DNA of 64,000 nt from NCBI GenBank assembly GCA_965240325.2, contig OZ251254.1, positions 310,001-374,000 of the forward strand, written 5' to 3'. The stretch's first letter is position 1. Each line of letters begins with the position of its first letter. Below are positions 4,966-15,883 of this stretch, one piece after another. Below the pieces are notes generated by a model. The model ran no database searches, was not told where the DNA came from, and was given only the letters and a program-made list of their open reading frames with translations. A program made the position numbers and the translations under genes. The stretch comes from Rebecca billardiae RCC1528. Its lineage: Eukaryota; Protista; Haptophyta.

Positions 4966-5078
4966 ATGGAGTGATGAAGCCGCCTTAGTGGGGTCAGAGC
5001 TCCGACCGTTACACTCCCGAGTGACACAATCTCCCGAAATATCGTGAATATGAATATGAATAAATATCTCGTCCTCGT

Positions 5079-5141
<63 letters not shown>
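5079..5141. repeat. (TA)n microsatellite
   Basis: Direct read. Confidence 0.98.
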
Positions 5142-5145
<4 letters not shown>

Positions 5146-5384
5146 TTATGAGTCCATTTAACGGTTCGTAATCGGAATAGTTATTAGGCCTAATTCCAGG
5201 GTGTAGAATAACTCCTGCGCGTTTTGATCATCGTGAGACGTCGGGCGGTTCCCGACGACAGTACTAACGACGACGTGGTATGCAACGGGCGATGTGCGAC
5301 CTCAACCTCGACGCGATTATCTCGGCAATAACATATATATATAGTAATAACTATAGTAACTACGGTACTAGCTCTGATGAGTAC

Positions 5385-5387
<3 letters not shown>

Positions 5388-5463
<76 letters not shown>

Positions 5464-5514
5464 TATAATATATATATATATATATTATATATATATTATA
5501 TATATATTATATTA
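5388..5514. repeat. (TA)n microsatellite, left half of the Copia target site
   Basis: Direct read; ends in TSD TATTA at 5510-5514. Confidence 0.98.
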
Positions 5515-6236
5515 TATTGGGTAAACGCGAGCTCCGAGCGTCTCGAGCCCTGCTAAGAGCTCACCGGCACGTCCTCGGGCGCGTCGTCGGTGACGCCCAC
5601 GAAGGCAATCTCGACCCTCGCTCCTCTGACGAGCGAAGCTAATCCTCCTGCCGCAACCAACTTTCGGTTGCGCAGGGTGACACGGCGTTTTGCGGCCCGG
5701 CTCGGGAATCTTGTAACCTTCCTGAGCCCCGCTTCCGTGCGTCCGCCAATCGCAGGCGTTACCGACGCACCGCCGTAAGCTCATCTTTCCCCCAGGTACT
5801 CGGTAATGTCATCGGACCTGGGTAAGCTGCGCACGGACCCATGATCCCGGATTCTCGATTCTCAAAACTGAGAATCCGGGCGTCCATGAATGAAGTGATC
5901 GAGTCCGTTGTTCCTTGGACTCTTCCACGATGGCGCCCGCCTGTGCCGCCGGCGTGCCATCCGTGCCGCGCTGCGCCGGGCCGTACCGCCCGTGCACGCG
6001 CCGCGTCCGTGTCGCTCCGCGTCCGCGCTGCCGCGTCCGCGCTCCGCGTCCACGTCGCTCCGCGCCAGCGCTGCTGCGCTCGCGCTCCTGCCGCCGCGCG
6101 CGCCGCGCGCGCGCGCCGCCAGAGCCAGCCACTGCGTAGCTGATGCCGCCGGCCCGCCTGGTGCGGCGCCGGCCCTGACGTCCCAGCGGCGACGCCATCT
6201 GCTGAGATGCGCGCCCCAGGCTGCGTCAGCTCAACA
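5515..6236 (-). repeat. 3' LTR (TGTTG...CAATA on the minus strand)
   Basis: Matches 12193-12914; small ORFs inside both copies translate identically. Confidence 0.95.
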
Positions 6237-6245
6237 CCCCCCCTC
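6237..6245 (-). promoter_or_regulatory. Polypurine tract
   Basis: GAGGGGGGG immediately 5' of the 3' LTR on the minus strand. Confidence 0.85.
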
Positions 6246-6272: not shown

Positions 6273-9200
6273 TTACCGCGCGCGCGTCGGGTGTCGGTCC
6301 ACCATGATGGCGTCGACGTGCCGCTTGAACGTCGCACCGTCCGTCGCCTTCGTCATGATGTCAGAGTGGTTGAGTGAGGTGTGTACCTTGACCACCTTTA
6401 CCTTGCCACCCTCCTGCGCGTCACGCACATAGTGATGCTTGATCTCGATGTGCTTCGAGCGCTTGTGGTGCACAGGATTCTCCACGAGGTCGATAGCCCC
6501 CTTGTTGTCCTCTCGCACCTCCGTCGCGTCCCGCGGCGGCTGCCGCATGGACTCGAGTATGCTCCGCAAGTAGCTCACCTCGCGGCAGCAATCGCTCAGC
6601 GCGACGTACTCCGCCTCCGTCGAGCTCAGCGAGACTGTACCTTGCAGCCCGCTGTGCCACGACACCGGCGCCCCATTGTAGAACACAATGTATCCACCCG
6701 TCGACCTGCCCTTGGTCTCCACCGGATTGCTTGCCCAATCGGAGTCAGCGAAAGCAAGTAGGTCGGGGTGCTCGGAATCTGTCGCAAACTTGAACAAGAT
6801 TCCCAATCGCGGGCATCCACGTAAGTAGCGCAGCACGCGCTTCGCACTTACCAGATCCACCGCCCGCGGACATGACATGCGTCGCGTCAGCATGTTCACC
6901 GCGTGCGCGATGTCCGGCCGCGCCGTGACCATCGCAAACATGAGACATCCCACCATCGCCTGGTAGTTCTCAATCTCTGCGCGCTGCAGCAACGCCTCGT
7001 CGTCGTCGCTCAGCTGCGCCCGCGCCGCCGGCTCCGGCGTGCGCGCCGGCGTGCTTGCGTTCAAACCGAACCGCTGAAGCACGCTCTCGACGTACGGCCC
7101 CAGATGCATCAGGATGCCGTCGTCATGAACTTCAAACACGGCGCCCAGGAACTTATCGAGCCGCTCACTCAGCTTGATCTCGTAATGCTCCTTCAGGTCA
7201 GCCGCCAGCTTCTCCACCGCGCGCGCGTCGCGCGTCAGGTTGAGAAACAGCAAGTCGTCGACAAAGCCGCCCGCGATGATGAACTCGCCCGGCGCCGACT
7301 CCTTGACGTAGATGCACGGCGCACTCGGACACTCCGAGAAGCCGCGCGCGAGCAGCTGGGTGCGGTGCGTGCGATGCCACGCGCGCCCAGACTGGCGTAG
7401 ACCCGGATACGCCTTGAGGCTCCGGCCCACGACTTTGTACCCCGGCGGCGCCTGCGTGCTCGGCACGTAGCCCGGCGGGAATGAGAAGAGAGGCCGCTCA
7501 TCCGGCTTCAACTCCGAGTTGAGGTACGCGTCCTTGACGTCGCCCTTCGACAGTATGCCCAGCGCCGCAACCGACGCTGCTCCCAAGTCGACCCTCGCGC
7601 CCGCCTGCTGAGCGGCGATCGCAACGAGTAGTCGCACTTGTTCCGGCCGGATCGTCGGAGCAAAGACCTCCTGAAAGTCGATCCCCGGCCGCTGTAGGTT
7701 CCCCAGTAGCACCGACCGCGCCTTGAAGCGCGTCACCTCGCCCTCCGGGTTCGACTTGACGTCAAAGACCCATTGGCTCGGCAACACCCGCGTGCCCTCC
7801 GGAACCACCACCTCTTCCGAGGTGCCGAGCAACTTGTGACCTTCCAAGTGCTCGAGCATGGCGCCCTGCCACTGGGGCGCCTCCGCCGACCGCATCGCCT
7901 CGCGATAGTTCGTCGGCACCTTCACGTTGATCTTCTGGAACACCGACGCGGCGCTGACGACGGCAGTAAGCAGCTGCGGCCGTCGGCGCGACGTCCGATC
8001 CCTGCGAAGCGGATCGTGTCCCATATCCAGACCGGGCGGCGGCGCGTCCTCGATCACGCCGTCGTCACCGTCTGCGCCGCGCGGCGGCCCGCCAGCATCT
8101 GCTGCGGCCCCGCGCCGTGATTCCGTCGGCGGTATCTGATCCTGCCGACCCGGCTGCGTCATCGACGCGCCTGCCCCGTCACGCCCGCCCTGCGGCGTCG
8201 GCGTCGACGGCTCTGCGCCAGCGCTGCTGCACCCGCGATGTCCCGCGTCCACGCTGCTGCGCCCGCGCCCCGACGTTGACGCATCTGCGTCGTCGTCGTA
8301 CCCGACGTCGAACTCTGTCGCGTCGTCATTCCCGGCGTCGGCTGGCGTCTCGCCGCCGTCGCCGTCCTCGTCCTCACAGTCGGCGTCACCACCGACCGGA
8401 CGAAGTCCGCCGCTTACCGCGGCGCCGTCACCATCACCCACGTACGCGCCACCGTCAGGTGCGCCCAGCGACGAGTGCCCCCCCTCGACCAGGTCGGTCT
8501 CGTCGATGCGTACGTCACGTGAGTGAACGAGACGTCCGTCGTCTAAACGACATACGTACCCGAGTACGTAGCGCCATGTACCGCGCCACTGCACGCCGTG
8601 CCCACCCCAGAGATAGACACGTCCGGGTAGTGCGCGCTGCCTCAGCTGCCCCAATGCATTGCGCCGTGCGCCCAGCATCAGCACGCGGCAGCGCGCTCCA
8701 AACGCCACGTGATGCTTCCACGTCGGGCGTTTGCCAAAGAACAGCTCATCCGGCGTGAGCCACTCAATGTCTCCATCGTCACGAATAATACCACGTGACG
8801 CCAGTCGATTGCGCGACGCGCATGCGTGCCACGCCGCGTAGTGCCAATCGACCCTCGAGACTCCACGCGCAACGACCGTGGCGCGCAGTCTCGACTTCAG
8901 CGTGCGGATAGCGCGTTCCGCCACGCCATTCGAGCTCGGCGAGTCGGGAGCCGACGTGACCGTCGACGAGAACCCAAGCTTCGCCAGCTCACCCTCGACG
9001 TACGTACTCAGCAACGTCGAGCCACCGTCGGTGTGAATATGGCGTCGCGCCATAGTACACCCCGACGCCAGGACCCAATGCGACATGTGCATGGCCCCTG
9101 TTCCAAGCAACTGCGCGTACCAGCGGAATGCCCGACCAACCTCGGCGTCATCCAAGCTGCGTAGCGCGTACACTTGCCATCGACGTGAATGCCCATCGAT

Positions 9201-9587
9201 GAATATGATCCCATGAGGATACCCTCCACGTGCGCCATCGGCCCCAACTGGTAAGTCGATCCGCGCCATAGAGAAGATGTCGACGTGCGTCACCTGCCCA
9301 GGGTAGTGCGCCGTCGGCATCGCGTCCGCGAACGACCGCCGCGTCATGCCCGCCGCCGACTGCTCGTCAAGCGGCTCACGCCGCGCGTTCGCCCCCTCCA
9401 TCCCCTCGGCCACGCGTCGCGTGCGCTCGAGTAGACGTTGGTCATTGGTGCCCGTTCGAACCGACCAAGTGCGTAACCACGCCGGATCAGCGCCTCGCGC
9501 CGCCTCCGTAGTAGTAGTGGTATCAGATACCGTAGTGGTTGTGTTTGTGGCTCGCACCTGCGCGGGTTCCGGGCTTAGGCGTTTGGG
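6273..9587 (-). CDS. pol: Pol part: integrase - reverse transcriptase - RNase H, probably entered by -1 frameshift (the open frame extends to 9983)
   Basis: IN: HVDIFS, IFIDGHSR, HTDGGS, SPSSNGVAERAIRTL. RT: WVFDVK, FKARSVLLGNLQRPGIDFQEVFAP, DVKDAYLN, FVDDLLF. RH: FADSDWA, STEAEY, EDNKGAI, KRSKHIEIKHH, DIMTK. Confidence 0.93.
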   Translation of the reverse strand, partial: PKRLSPEPAQVRATNTTTTVSDTTTTTEAARGADPAWLRTWSVRTGTNDQRLLERTRRVAEGMEGANARREPLDEQSAAGMTRRSFADAMPTAHYPGQVTHVDIFSMARIDLPVGADGARGGYPHGIIFIDGHSRRWQVYALRSLDDAEVGRAFRWYAQLLGTGAMHMSHWVLASGCTMARRHIHTDGGSTLLSTYVEGELAKLGFSSTVTSAPDSPSSNGVAERAIRTLKSRLRATVVARGVSRVDWHYAAWHACASRNRLASRGIIRDDGDIEWLTPDELFFGKRPTWKHHVAFGARCRVLMLGARRNALGQLRQRALPGRVYLWGGHGVQWRGTWRYVLGYVCRLDDGRLVHSRDVRIDETDLVEGGHSSLGAPDGGAYVGDGDGAAVSGGLRPVGGDADCEDEDGDGGETPADAGNDDATEFDVGYDDDADASTSGRGRSSVDAGHRGCSSAGAEPSTPTPQGGRDGAGASMTQPGRQDQIPPTESRRGAAADAGGPPRGADGDDGVIEDAPPPGLDMGHDPLRRDRTSRRRPQLLTAVVSAASVFQKINVKVPTNYREAMRSAEAPQWQGAMLEHLEGHKLLGTSEEVVVPEGTRVLPSQWVFDVKSNPEGEVTRFKARSVLLGNLQRPGIDFQEVFAPTIRPEQVRLLVAIAAQQAGARVDLGAASVAALGILSKGDVKDAYLNSELKPDERPLFSFPPGYVPSTQAPPGYKVVGRSLKAYPGLRQSGRAWHRTHRTQLLARGFSECPSAPCIYVKESAPGEFIIAGGFVDDLLFLNLTRDARAVEKLAADLKEHYEIKLSERLDKFLGAVFEVHDDGILMHLGPYVESVLQRFGLNASTPARTPEPAARAQLSDDDEALLQRAEIENYQAMVGCLMFAMVTARPDIAHAVNMLTRRMSCPRAVDLVSAKRVLRYLRGCPRLGILFKFATDSEHPDLLAFADSDWASNPVETKGRSTGGYIVFYNGAPVSWHSGLQGTVSLSSTEAEYVALSDCCREVSYLRSILESMRQPPRDATEVREDNKGAIDLVENPVHHKRSKHIEIKHHYVRDAQEGGKVKVVKVHTSLNHSDIMTKATDGATFKRHVDAIMVDRHPTRAR

Positions 9588-12192
9588 GGCAGCGCAGCGC
9601 CAACGCGCCCCCGCCCCGCACCCACGCGCCGCACCGGCGCCCTGCGCCGTGCGCGCGGCTCCGCCGGCGCATCGCCGACGTCCGGCCCCACCTGGCGCCG
9701 TACGATCTCGGCGCGCAGCGTGGAATCGCGCGGCAGCTGCACGACGCCGCCTCCCAGCGCCGTAAAGTCCGCAGTGTTGCCGCGCTGTGAGTAGTGGAAC
9801 TTGATGCCTGCGTCCGCGCAGTGTTCGACCGACAGCAGCGGCGCCGTGACGCGCCGCGACGCCCACGCCTCGATCTCGAGCGTGAGGACCTTGTCGCTGT
9901 CGTCGTCCGCCGCAAGCTTGACCACCAGGGTCCCGCGGTGAGTGACCCGCTCCCGCGCACCGTTCCCCCACTCGATCTGACATGCGCCGTCCACCGGGGT
10001 AAGATTCGTCAAATCCTCGGCCATGGCGATGTTCTTCCGTGCGCCAGTGTCAAACACCAACGCCCGCGTGTTGTCCTCCGGCGGCGCCACGCGTGCCTCG
10101 GCCGCCCGCGCCGCGACGATCTCGATGTCCTCGTCGCGCTGCGCCCTGCCGCCGATAGCCGCGCCAATAGGCGCCAAGCCGAGTCCGGCGCCGGCGCCGC
10201 CGCCGTCTCCGGCGTCAGCGTCACCGTCGCCACCAACGGCGCCGTCGGGCTCGTCACCCTGCTCGGGTGCGAACGCGACCTGCGTGCGGACCGTGCCGCC
10301 GCCGTTGCCATTCCCGACCACGGCGCGGGTGCTGCCCCCGCCACCGCCGCCGCCACCGCCACCGCCGCTCCGATGTGAGCCACGGCTGCGATCCGACCGC
10401 GTCGACGCCGCGTCATCGCCAGCGTTCGAGTCGCGATCAGCCTGCGTCACCTGCGGGCAGTAACGCTTGATATGCCCCACGGCGCCGCACTTGTAGCAGC
10501 GCGGCCCGTGCGCGTCGTCGGAGTCGTCCTGGCCTCCGCGGCCGGCGCCGCGGCCAGTGCCGCCGCCGCCACCGCCACGACCTCCGCCGCCGCCACCACG
10601 GCCAGCCGGCGACGTCGTGTCGCCGCAGCCGCCACCCGCCGACGCCGCCGCCGCCTGCGCCAGGCGGAGCCCGTCGATTGGGTGCGCACGGGTAGTCCCG
10701 CCGCCTCCTGGCATGCGGCCACCCGCCCCTGGGCGCCCAGGGCCGCCGCGGTCAACCCGCTTGCCCTTGGAGAAGTCCCAGTCCTCGAACTTGCCGTTGA
10801 GCTCGTGCACGAGCTCCTGCACGTCGAAGTTCGTCACGGTCCTGTAGTCCTTCGACTCGTACCGCGTCCGCATCTCGATGCCCGCGCCCACCGACGGAAT
10901 GAACTCGATGAGCCGCGCAAGCATCTCCGCCGCTGGCGCTGCGTCACTCAGCTCCTGCAGCAGCACGTGGTTGTGCTGTAGCACCTGGAAGAGCTCGAGG
11001 GCGCCGACGCCGTCCTTGCCGCAGTCCGGCAGGACCGTCCGATGCCAGCGTGCCCGCACCGACATGTACTTCCGCATGTCGTCGGGCTTGCGCATGCGCA
11101 GGATCGTCTTCCACAGGTACAGAAACTCGCGCCCCGGCGTAAGTGCGCCCCGGCGCGCGCGCTCCTCCTGCACCTCCGGCTGCGTCTCCATGAGGCGGTT
11201 GATGTGCTGCCACGCAGCCTCCGTCACCCACGACCGCAGCTCGGTGCGTAAGAAAGCCGTCCCTTTCTCGTACTGCGCCCCGGCGTACTTGGCGGGGTCC
11301 GCCTCGTCGCCGTCCGGCGCTGCCTCCAACACGCTCTGTCGGAGCTTTATGTCCAGCATGGCGTGCTCGCTCGCCTGCCGCTCATACATCTGTTCCTCGG
11401 TCTCGCGCTCGCGGCGGTAGAGCTCGCGCGCGCGCGGATCGAGCGTCACGGCAGCGCCGCCCGCGGGCGCCGCGCCACCGATCCCGCCGGCGCCGCCCGT
11501 AGGCGCCGCGCCGACGCCGGCACCGCCCATAGGCGTCGCGCCGTCAGTCCCAGCCGGCGCACCTGCAGCGCCGCCTGTGCCCACACCCGGACTGGGTGTG
11601 CCGGCCGCCGGACCCGGAGAAATTCCGGATCCGCCGCCCGCCGCCGGACCTGAACCCGGTCCGGTCGCCGTCGGGCCGCCCGGAGTGGCTAAACCACTCC
11701 CCGCGCCCGCCGAGGCAGCCTGCGCGTAGCTTGGCGCCTGCCTCGCCCCCGCCGCCGCCGCCGCGCGTTCCGCCGCGGCCCGGCGCTCGGCGTGCTCGCG
11801 GCGCTCGTGCTCGTGGCGATGATCGAGCAGCCGCTGCTGCAGCGCGTAGTTCTCACGCGCCAGGTCCATCCGCTCGGCACTGACCTTGATCATCTTCGCC
11901 GCGGATGGGTTGAATGTCTCCCACGTCAAGTTGTACTCCTCGAGCGTGTTGATGCGGTGCTCCGCGTTCGGGCCATGCGTCACGATGATGCCGTTCAGTG
12001 CGGACATCGTAGCACCTTGCCCCGCCGGAAGCGCCGCCAGCCTGCTCGCCGATTGCGCGAGCCAGCGCTGCTGATTGCCCTTGTCGTTGAGCATCCCCAC
12101 GTCGACCGAGCCGTGCATCCGGCCGCTCGTGCCCATCGGCGCGATCGATGAGAAAGCGCCGCGCGTACGATCCCTCCCGATCGCTGCATGCA

Positions 12193-12193
<1 letters not shown>
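9575..12193 (-). CDS. gag: Gag with CCHC zinc knuckle fused to aspartic protease
   Basis: 872-aa ORF with CYKCGAVGHIKRYC knuckle and protease LVFDTGARKNI...IEWGNG...PLLSV. Exact start uncertain. Confidence 0.9.
9581..9587 (-). promoter_or_regulatory. Candidate -1 ribosomal frameshift slippery heptamer C CCA AAC
   Basis: X XXY YYZ pattern in the ORF1 frame, one codon before the TAA stop. A -1 slip gives PKRLSPE of the pol frame. Confidence 0.55.
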
Positions 12194-13204
<1,011 letters not shown>

Positions 13205-15883
13205 GAGGCCGTCGATCTCCATGATGGTGGTCTCGCTATTTGCACGCCAGAATCGCACCGGCTAGATCACACTTTGGCAGTCTGAAAATGGCACAGGCGG
13301 CGCGGGCGGTTCCGCCCGACTTTACACGGCTGACGCGCCCTGCCTCTCCGCGCTCGACGACGAGCTCAAGGCTGCTCAAGCTGCTGCCGCCGCTGCGCAC
13401 GGGCATCGGCAAGCGCCGAGTGCATCATATTATTGGCAGCCCGCTGCCGCTGGGGACAGGTTGCACGGAGAAATGACCGCCCGCGACTGACAGATGTTAC
13501 ATACTTACATTCACAGTGGACGCGACCTGTCCACCCGTCTTTCGGTACATCGCGCCCGTCCCATGGCGGCCGGCGCGTGGCGCGAGTGCTTGGAAACCAC
13601 GGAGCACACGGCCGGTGGTTTCCGACCTTCGCCGCCACGGCCCGCCTCCCCTTCCGCCCGCAATCGGTACCACAGTCTGGTGCCCAGTTCCTCTCACTCC
13701 CGCGTCGTCAGTGGCGCGAAGCCGAAGCGCATGGCGAAGAAGCACAACTGGGACCTGGATACAGGTGGTAGATAGAGCCTTCAAGGAGGCTGCCGTCGCG
13801 AACGAGCAGGATGCGCCGGTTGTAGTATGCGCGTGCACCCTTGCACGAACGTGTGCTGGTCTCCTGCTGCACTGCCCATACCGTACGCACGAGCACGCAA
13901 CCGTGCGCACGCGCTCAGGTGGCTCGGACCACACACGCGAGTGCTTGTGAAGCTCGCCTCACGGGGCCTTCGTAGAAGAAGGCGGGCAACCGGAGCGCGC
14001 TAAGGAAGCAGAAGACGATGCTCGCCAAACGCGTCCAGCGCGCGAGGGCGAAGCTTGCTACGGCGCGCGCGGCCTCTGCTGTTGCAGCTCGGGCCGCTGC
14101 TCCGGCCGTGCAGGCGTCTGGCGCGGGGTCCTCGGACAAGCAGGCGAACTCTGGGCAGTCTGCCTTTGCCGCCGGCAAGAAGTATCGGAAGCGCACGCAT
14201 TTGGTCGAGCGCGTGGCGCGCTCGCGCGCCGTGACGCAGCAAGCAGGCGATCCTTGACAAGCGCCTCGCTGACGCTCAGCAGGCCGAGGCAACGAGCGCG
14301 GCGCTCGACCACGCTGACAGGCACGCCCTGAGTGAGGGGGAACACACCTTTCGAGACAGCACTCAGGCGCTCGACGTTGAGTATCTCATTGATCGCGCGC
14401 GTGTGTGATCACGTCAGCCAGACTAAGTCGCGCGAGGTGGAGCAGGTGGTAGCGCGCCTCTTCGCCGCATCATCTGCAGCTGACTGGCGTGCACCCGCCA
14501 GCTCGCTCACGTCGCGCGCGGCAGCGGTCGGCTTCCACCCTGTTCGCACAGCGCGGCGCCGGCTGCACCGCCCGTTCCGCTGGACGCCGGCTCGCTCGTC
14601 GTTGACGACTTCTTCTTCAACCCGGTCGCGCGGGCGCGGTGATGGTACACTCCGGCAGGCAGATGCGGCGCACTGTCTGATGCTCTATGAGTGCGTGTGC
14701 CTTTCCATCCACGATGTCGACTCAGGCTGCTACGCGTGGCATCCAGCTCGAGGCGGAGGTCGCCAGGGGTCGCCCAAGGTCGAGTCTGCCTTGCGTGTGC
14801 TAGGTCGCCGAGGTGCGGCCGCAGGGTGCTCGCTGGCTGACTCCTGACGATGACGAGGAGTTGCGCGCCGCATCGCAACCTCTCGCACGTATCGTGCCGA
14901 CCGCGAGTCGAGTGGATGACGCTCGTGGCGGCTGCTCTTCAAATGACGCGCGGCCGGGCCCTTGGCGAGCTTGGGAGGAGGGCTCGGTCTGCTACATGTG
15001 CGTCAGTAGTCACGGCCTAAACCGTGCGCAAGACACATTGAGTCGTACATGGCGCGGCAGCAACGGCCGCACCGCGAGGGCACCGTGGGCGGGCAGCCAT
15101 GCTCCAAAGGGCCGAAATGTAACACCAAGGTCAGTTTCTCGTGCAACCTGTCTGGGCGAGTTCGCGTCGTACGTCGCACGCCTCGGCGCAGCGAGCGCGC
15201 ACGCGGCGGCGCGCGGGTCGCGCTGACGATTTGGCCGAACGGCCGGGAGATGGTACTGAGTCCGGCTAGGGCAAACCGCCCGTCGGGATCGGGCCATATT
15301 TCGTCGCATTTTTCGCGCCACCGTCCTGTTCGCCGACGACGCGCGCGCGCGCGAGCTTTCGCGATTCGTGATTCGGCCAATCGGCGAATCGCACATTCTC
15401 TGCCCCGATGAACGATGTAGTTCCGAGGGAATTTGGGGGTTGAAGCGTTGTGAATCCTTGCCGTGACAAAAAATATAATTGGCTACTATGGGGGTGGTTC
15501 GCCGGAGCTCGGGATCCCGCCCCAAAATCCACCCGCCAAGAGAGAATCCGTCAATGACAGGGGGAATCTGCCGTGGTCTTGGGCTGAAATCATCTGATCG
15601 TGCAGCTTTTTGTCGGTCTGCGAAAGTTGTGAAGCGGTGGTTGTGGGGATCCCCTCACGACCGTAAAATGACCGAAATTAGACTCGGAGCGCACATCAGA
15701 GGATCAGGCCCGATCAGCGTCGAGTTTGATGGACCTTGGCTCAATAGTGATATATTAGTATTTTGATCGGTTCGTTACCCGTTTGCGTCGGTCGGTCGCC
15801 CACGTCAAAAAAATCCTTTGCCGATTGCCGCGCGCGCCCAACAGGCGTCACAGGCTCGTCCGTCCGATCCGACCGCGCCCTCG

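Follow-up and report, generated by a model that had tools for sequence, protein, structure and literature searches.

A Ty1/copia-type long terminal repeat (LTR) retrotransposon of the haptophyte Rebecca billardiae RCC1528 most likely expresses its integrase (IN), reverse transcriptase (RT) and RNase H (RH) through a programmed −1 frameshift placed between protease (PR) and IN, and this arrangement seems to have been inherited by a whole clade of Copia elements. The element lies on the minus strand of a 64,000-nt stretch of contig OZ251254.1 (positions 310,001 to 374,000; assembly GCA_965240325.2), which we call the window and whose numbering is used throughout; the genome comprises 72 Mb in 41 contigs and the window has a GC content of about 73%. 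We infer that ribosomes slip at the heptamer C CCA AAC, with a long hairpin behind it acting as stimulator. The textbook view of Copia elements is that they do without −1 frameshifting and instead rely on a single open reading frame (ORF), on splicing, on a +1 shift or on readthrough. The sequence features that mark a eukaryotic or viral −1 frameshift signal are present in the window copy, namely an overlapping frame, a phased heptamer and a 6-nt spacer (about 5–9 nt being usual) followed by a predicted structure, and the signal is conserved in diverged relatives. With the split, heptamer, spacer and stem kept in 12 lineages, the programmed shift put forward in the original prediction is the best-supported reading.

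The frame break and its conservation

ORF1, which encodes Gag and the protease, ends with CTG CCC CCA AAC GCC TAA, and the codons of ORF2 (IN-RT-RH) start one base upstream of those of ORF1, which places ORF2 in the −1 frame, the overlap extending from 9983 to 9575 (Table 1). Codon starts and coordinates thus agree with what had been claimed for the frame of IN-RT-RH, and the heptamer was located at 9587..9581, correctly phased and one codon before the stop, also as claimed. It is the sole phased heptamer among the 887 ORF1 codons scanned in the window copy, and its site overlaps a run of five C (C5).

The original prediction had cautioned that a 1-nt deletion or an assembly error in this run would give the same picture, and had named other copies as a check. 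The family has at least 39 copies in the genome, and in all 30 further copies that were aligned over 701 nt the break, the heptamer and the TAA are invariant, with no frame-changing indel and no extra base fusing the ORFs. The sole length difference among them is an in-frame 30-nt deletion further downstream in a subfamily B (about 92% identical). Over the 3.7-kb loci, 29 of the 30 copies have an uninterrupted ORF1 and 28 an uninterrupted ORF2, and most of the 39 have an ORF2 that runs on for 1248 aa or more. Together with the 12 lineages described below, the 30 copies rule out an assembly error or a one-off deletion, so that the caution can be dropped. A second family of the same genome, B′ (45% IN identity, 7 copies), also has ORF2 at −1 and ends ORF1 with CCG GGA AAC GAG TAG, and the remoter Copia families of the genome (30–35% identity) have a single ORF of 2000–2250 aa.

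Relatives were found via word-based protein searches with ORF2 of families A (that of the window) and B′, and the lineages derive from the genome itself (A and B′), from metagenomes and from public read assemblies. The searches gave 24 proteins at 37–57% identity, all of 580–1170 aa and corresponding to ORF2 alone, while the matches at ≤34% identity that were long enough to judge were all fused polyproteins with gag, protease, rve and RVT_2. One protein match comes from Diacronema lutheri (P0040). DNA was examined for 12 of the matching proteins, P0003 being without DNA and P0005 and P0034 representing one lineage. In 12 lineages, whose ORF2 identities are 41–57%, ORF2 is in the −1 frame and the ORF1 stop is preceded at 0–9 codons by a phased X XXA AAZ: C CCA AAC in one (the window family), G GGA AAC in five, and G GGA AAG and A AAA AAC in three each. 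This placement goes beyond chance, as 12 of the 17 phased heptamers in the 6566 ORF1 codons of these lineages are the near-stop sites and the other 5 lie elsewhere. The stop codon abuts the heptamer directly in five lineages, and in two the −1 frame opens merely 27 nt (L068) and 21 nt (L075) upstream of it, so that hardly any alternative shift site is left there. The X triplet varies blockwise between lineages (CCC, GGG, AAA) with the pattern retained, as selection on slipperiness would predict and unlike decay.

A tree of 44 proteins unites the 26 ORF2-only proteins in a single clade (support 100). The inspected lineages are distributed across all major branches of this clade, and its sister is L065, a single-ORF family of the same genome. 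Neither the word-based searches nor the tree contained a fused relative inside the clade, and a Joint Genome Institute (JGI) metagenome scan with the IN alignment returned no relative. These data also bear on the idea that the break is an inherited defect, either of a non-autonomous family mobilised by the proteins of another element or in the form of a sequencing error in the C run. The C5 run does overlap the site, and due to shared ancestry 30 identical copies alone would be compatible with a defective master. However, the 12 lineages bring differing heptamers, assemblies and sequencing sources with both ORFs long and open, the blockwise change of the heptamer is unlike a decayed site and the clade yielded no fused member, which leaves a defect with hardly any credibility. 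Equally, a polymerase adding or dropping a base in a homopolymer could bring part of the mRNAs into frame, and the six-A run of A AAA AAC in three lineages and the C5 run of the window copy would offer places for such transcriptional slippage. But G GGA AAC or G GGA AAG, whose homopolymer runs do not exceed three, is the heptamer in most lineages, and the runs that support transcriptional slippage in the potyvirus and bacterial insertion sequence (IS) cases are far longer than three. As conserved phase, spacer and stem are moreover hallmarks of slippage by the ribosome, we regard a transcriptional origin as extremely improbable.

The predicted hairpin and alternative routes of expression

Downstream of the heptamer the window copy is predicted to fold into a long hairpin of −57.5 kcal/mol, with the minimum free energy (MFE) structure making up 36% of the ensemble. 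Compared to 200 dinucleotide shuffles its z-score is −3.26, and none of the 200 folds as well. The original prediction had been unable to confirm a downstream pseudoknot; a downstream structure is indeed predicted, as a long hairpin and not as a demonstrated pseudoknot. Rfam gave no family match in 9300..9800.

In most lineages a GC-rich stem begins about 6–7 nt past the heptamer, a spacing that was judged by eye where the hairpin is local (five lineages). In seven lineages an invariant GCCCG starts 6 nt past the heptamer (7 in B′), and it is retained although the residue preceding the encoded proline varies. When the 150 nt behind the heptamer were folded with RNAfold for seven lineages and for subfamily B of family A, the base of a long hairpin fell at GCCCG in all folds except that of L070, in which GCCCGGG pairs in a local hairpin instead; in the seven folds with the long hairpin the first pair lies 3–7 nt past the heptamer. 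The long hairpin is closed by CGGGC (UGGGC in B′) within the integrase codons for R-x-G-T. These belong to a motif at the integrase N-terminus that starts about 100 nt past the stop in ORF2 and whose codons also form the 3′ arm. L075, L078, L079 and L080 have GC-rich local hairpins after a spacer of 6–9 nt (spacing read by eye from the sequence), and in the 140-nt folds their first paired base is nearer to the heptamer than this by-eye spacing.

The arms of the hairpin co-vary between lineages. Duplex energies were calculated for each 5′ arm against each codon-aligned 3′ arm of 10 lineages and assessed by permutation, and cognate full arms reached −34.2 kcal/mol versus −28.2 kcal/mol for non-cognate ones (p ~1e-5). 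The difference persists when the invariant GCCCG/CGGGC is left out (−21.2 versus −17.1 kcal/mol, p ~1e-4). The cognate pair of the window ranks first in its row and column, being tied with L076 for the row without the invariant pairs. Lower-stem variants found among the copies of family A preserve pairing (A-U to G.U, G.U to A-U) or fall in a bulge, and the 30-nt deletion of subfamily B takes away the apex alone while the stem stays. The apex (9497–9530, minus strand) contains the palindrome GGTATCTGATACC. Read on the plus strand, this is TGGTATCAGATACC, which is similar to the tRNA-iMet primer-site word found in many Copia elements; as the palindrome is inside the 30 nt deleted in subfamily B, it is probably dispensable.

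Several points weigh against a programmed shift. Set against other segments of the element, the 140 nt that follow the heptamer have an unexceptional raw MFE (z = +0.56), and the mean of this z-score over the 12 lineages is about −1.5. Since every segment of such a GC-rich element folds strongly, raw energy fails to single out the region, and the argument for a structure is accordingly drawn from the shuffle z-score, from where the stem lies and from the co-variation of its arms. The type of stimulator is mixed in the clade, seven lineages having a long-range and five a local hairpin. Three lineages use G GGA AAG, and G as the Z base makes a poor slipper in animal in-vitro systems, a result that is said to go back to Brierley et al. 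1992. The signal is kept in 12 of 13 lineages, and the sole exception, L071 (1380–2000), shares the A AAA AAC tail of L079 (2400–3020) but has its integrase in the +1 frame. This is likely, and most simply, an indel in a short-read contig, which could not be located in the comparison of L071 with L079 as the linker is too diverged. Finally, the window copy contains a GT..AG pair of plausible consensus that would fuse the two frames.

Removal of the corresponding 134-nt intron would join Gln834 of ORF1 exactly to a GTG of ORF2 (Val-Arg-Ala-Thr...) and eliminate heptamer and stop, so that Pol would be made from spliced and Gag-PR from unspliced mRNA. The intron of the plant gypsy element Ogre is a comparable case. 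Other Copia elements use splicing to set their Gag:Pol ratio (PMC5580714). In the window copy, however, 27 of the 34 GT..YAG pairs across the stop are frame-fusing, and such a pair is expected by chance because most GT dinucleotides are the beginning of GTG codons in ORF1 and most AG dinucleotides the end of CAG codons in ORF2. Over the 12 lineages the fusing length class is not enriched among stop-spanning GT..YAG pairs (286, 225 and 273 per class), and seven of them have no fusing G|GTRRG donor. Furthermore, the acceptor falls within the conserved 5′ arm of the hairpin, the genome has no copy missing exactly the 134 nt, and splicing accounts for neither the phased heptamer nor the fixed short spacer to the stem nor the stop within 9 codons. 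The intron 9691..9558, being non-conserved, expected by chance from codon usage and without an intron-less copy, was rejected as the main mechanism, and we consider splicing very improbable.

ORF2 might also be translated independently, by reinitiation, leaky scanning or internal entry, in which case no fusion protein would be formed. Gene callers put ORF2 starts soon after the ORF1 stop in several contigs, and Gao et al. 2003 reportedly proposed such routes for some plant Copia elements with non-overlapping ORFs. Against this, the first in-frame ATG past the stop in the window copy is downstream of the integrase N-terminal motif, Pol usually enters particles as a Gag fusion, and the conserved heptamer, phase and spacer would be given no role, all of which makes independent translation very unlikely.

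Protease, integrase and architecture of the element

The position of the break relative to the protease was addressed by aligning the ORF1 tails of nine lineages and by predicting a structure for the window segment 10078..9680 (pLDDT, predicted local distance difference test, 89.7; pTM, predicted template modelling score, 0.82). The best folds retrieved by Foldseek from the PDB were the proteases of xenotropic murine leukaemia virus-related virus (XMRV), feline immunodeficiency virus (FIV) and Mason-Pfizer monkey virus (M-PMV) and the retropepsin domain of DDI1, at probabilities of 0.9–1.0 and template modelling (TM) scores of about 0.45–0.54 with a best E-value of merely 2e-3. A Pfam scan of the ORF1 tail gave no protease family, even at E = 10. 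As modelled, the tail folds like a retroviral protease, and because of this fold the frame break would truly lie between PR and IN; the protease was assigned to ORF1 due to the retropepsin-like model and the D-T-G-A motif. In four lineages the glycine of the active-site D-T/S-G is substituted (D-S-A in L061, D-T-A in L073, D-T-R in L075 and D-S-Q in L080), which is odd for a working retropepsin. L067 (1–651) has heptamer, stop and stem like its relatives, and the last 216 residues of its ORF1 are unalignable to the protease of the others and resemble a low-complexity or coiled segment.

At the integrase N-terminus the HHCC zinc finger is not found, as W-S-V-R-T-G-T and D-E-Q-S replace W-H-x-R-L-G-H and C-x-x-C. 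All four ligands are absent across the frameshift clade (window 9380–9482, minus strand; L061 5120–5230). Most of them are lost in the sister single-ORF family L065 too, and the canonical motif is retained in L064, a distant family of the same genome. The family has been recently active despite the lost zinc ligands.

The retrotransposon that encloses the frame break is complete. It has the direct LTRs, the polypurine tract and the 5-bp target-site duplication (TAATA at both ends) of a Ty1/copia element, and its domain order Gag-PR-IN-RT-RH is that of Ty1/copia (Pseudoviridae). ORF2 terminates in a copia-type RNase H end (...TKA...), and the Copia placement is backed by RT phylogeny. The element is a young, recently active Ty1/copia-type LTR retrotransposon. 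At the expected primer-binding position it has TGCATGCA instead of the TGG... complement of a tRNA 3′ end, as read from the sequence with no tRNA comparison made. The insertion site is a long (AT)n microsatellite (window 5044–5513 and 12915–13230) bordered by a (GT)n array, with an additional (AT)n block at 5044–5165. Three metagenome or read-assembly contigs of relatives (L074, L078, L081) show another ORF1 about 300–500 nt after ORF2, which suggests either that tandem elements share an LTR or that the assembler circled a repeat.

Table 1. Positions in the window of the parts of the retrotransposon and of the sequences discussed in the text, in the order of transcription.
Feature	Position	Strand	Details
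5′ LTR	12192..12914	−	723 nt; 723/723 positions identical to 3′ LTR
Palindrome TGCATGCA	12185..12192	−	8 nt; abuts 5′ LTR; expected position of the tRNA primer-binding site
ORF1 (Gag, CCHC zinc knuckle, protease)	9575..12193	−	872 codons from first ATG; a later ATG may be the real start
CCHC zinc knuckle of Gag	10451..10501	−	PF00098; ORF1 residues 565–581
Protease domain	9680..10078	−	motif FDTGA, Asp codon 10051..10049; from alignment and structure model
Candidate GT..AG intron	9558..9691	−	134 nt; donor CAG|GTGGGG (GT at 9691), acceptor GCGCAG| ending 9558
Slippery heptamer C CCA AAC	9581..9587	−	X XXY YYZ phase in ORF1 frame
ORF1 stop TAA	9575..9577	−	within 6-nt spacer GCCUAA (9580..9575)
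Predicted stimulatory hairpin	9450..9574	−	125 nt; first pair G9574-C9450, 6 nt past heptamer; lower stem ~28 bp
Codons of integrase N-terminal motif	9447..9482	−	A-W-L-R-T-W-S-V-R-T-G-T; also form hairpin 3′ arm
ORF2 (IN-RT-RH)	6273..9587	−	−1 frame, given from heptamer; frame open from 9983
Integrase catalytic core	8547..9344	−	D..D..E in sequence; weak rve_3 match
Copia-type reverse transcriptase RVT_2	7035..7811	−	PF07727, E = 3e-33
Polypurine tract GAGGGGGGG	6237..6245	−	immediately 5′ of 3′ LTR
3′ LTR	5514..6236	−	723 nt

Proposed mechanism and comparison with other retroelements

For the window element we propose that the majority of ribosomes would finish ORF1 at the TAA (9577..9575) and release Gag-PR. 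A minority would be stalled on C CCA AAC by the base of the long hairpin (9574..9450) 6 nt downstream, with the P site occupied by CCA and the A site by AAC. The stop, which lies inside the spacer in the window copy and immediately behind the heptamer in five lineages, may contribute to the stalling. The P- and A-site tRNAs would then re-pair one base back and translation would continue as ...Pro-Pro-Asn-Arg-Leu-Ser-Pro-Glu... into IN-RT-RH. The product would be a Gag-PR-IN-RT-RH fusion of about 1970 residues, close in size to the 2000–2250-aa polyproteins of the other Copia families of the genome.

The nearest likeness is found in the beta- and deltaretroviruses (mouse mammary tumour virus, MMTV; M-PMV; human T-lymphotropic virus, HTLV; bovine leukaemia virus, BLV), which share a −1 slip at X XXA AAC after the protease, a short spacer and an RNA structure. 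They also share the outcome, predicted for the Copia clade, that more protease is made than downstream enzymes. Among the classic heptamers are A AAA AAC and G GGA AAC, both of which occur in these viruses, and flaviviruses of the Japanese encephalitis group have CCC in the X slot. In contrast to the Copia element, in which Gag and PR form one ORF, these retroviruses have an extra gag/pro shift, and because the Copia element has none its protease would be as abundant as Gag. Further differences are the order after the shift, which is IN-RT-RH in the Copia element and RT-RH-IN in the viruses, and the predicted 125-nt hairpin, which is formed partly from the coding sequence of a conserved motif, whereas the retroviral pseudoknot is compact.

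Within its own superfamily the element stands apart in other ways. Ty1 and Ty2 of Saccharomyces also obtain an excess of Gag via ribosomal frameshifting in an ORF overlap (PMC5580714), but Ty1 employs a +1 shift at CUU AGG C that works via a rare tRNA, does not depend on a stem and lies upstream of PR, so that PR belongs to Pol. Drosophila copia, BARE1 and Arabidopsis EVD agree in domain order and in the aim of a Gag excess (PMC5580714), yet they use one gag-pol ORF together with a Gag-only spliced or sub-genomic RNA, while the window element has split ORFs with a slippery site and a stem. The strategies documented for Copia elements in the literature covered are a single ORF with splicing, the +1 shift of Ty1 and a stop codon in Tca2 (PMC5580714); the original prediction likewise named one ORF, splicing and a +1 shift as the usual ones. 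The CoDi Copia elements of diatoms, which are marine-algal too, have been described as having at most one stop codon or frameshift separating gag from pol, a description that includes neither a slippery site nor the position relative to PR and IN nor a structure (PMC2806351). A −1 signal between PR and IN of a Copia element was not found described in the literature searched, which is a weak absence as the recoding survey of Gao et al. 2003 was not covered.

Taken further, and with a little less than even confidence, we suggest that a whole and probably ancient clade of algal Copia elements swapped the single ORF for a retrovirus-like pro/pol −1 shift whose hairpin is closed by the codons of an integrase N-terminus devoid of zinc ligands. 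If this is true, integrase sequence and frameshift efficiency would be forced to co-evolve, and the abundant product would be Gag-PR and not Gag alone, with the protease made in an amount equal to Gag, unlike in every well-studied Copia element. For genome annotation it would mean that elements of this kind should not be counted as broken. The young copies, the natural heptamer variants and the 30-nt apical deletion would together provide a natural mutant series for frameshifting driven by a long hairpin. The clade as a whole would show that the retroviral pro/pol solution arose, or persisted, in the Copia superfamily.

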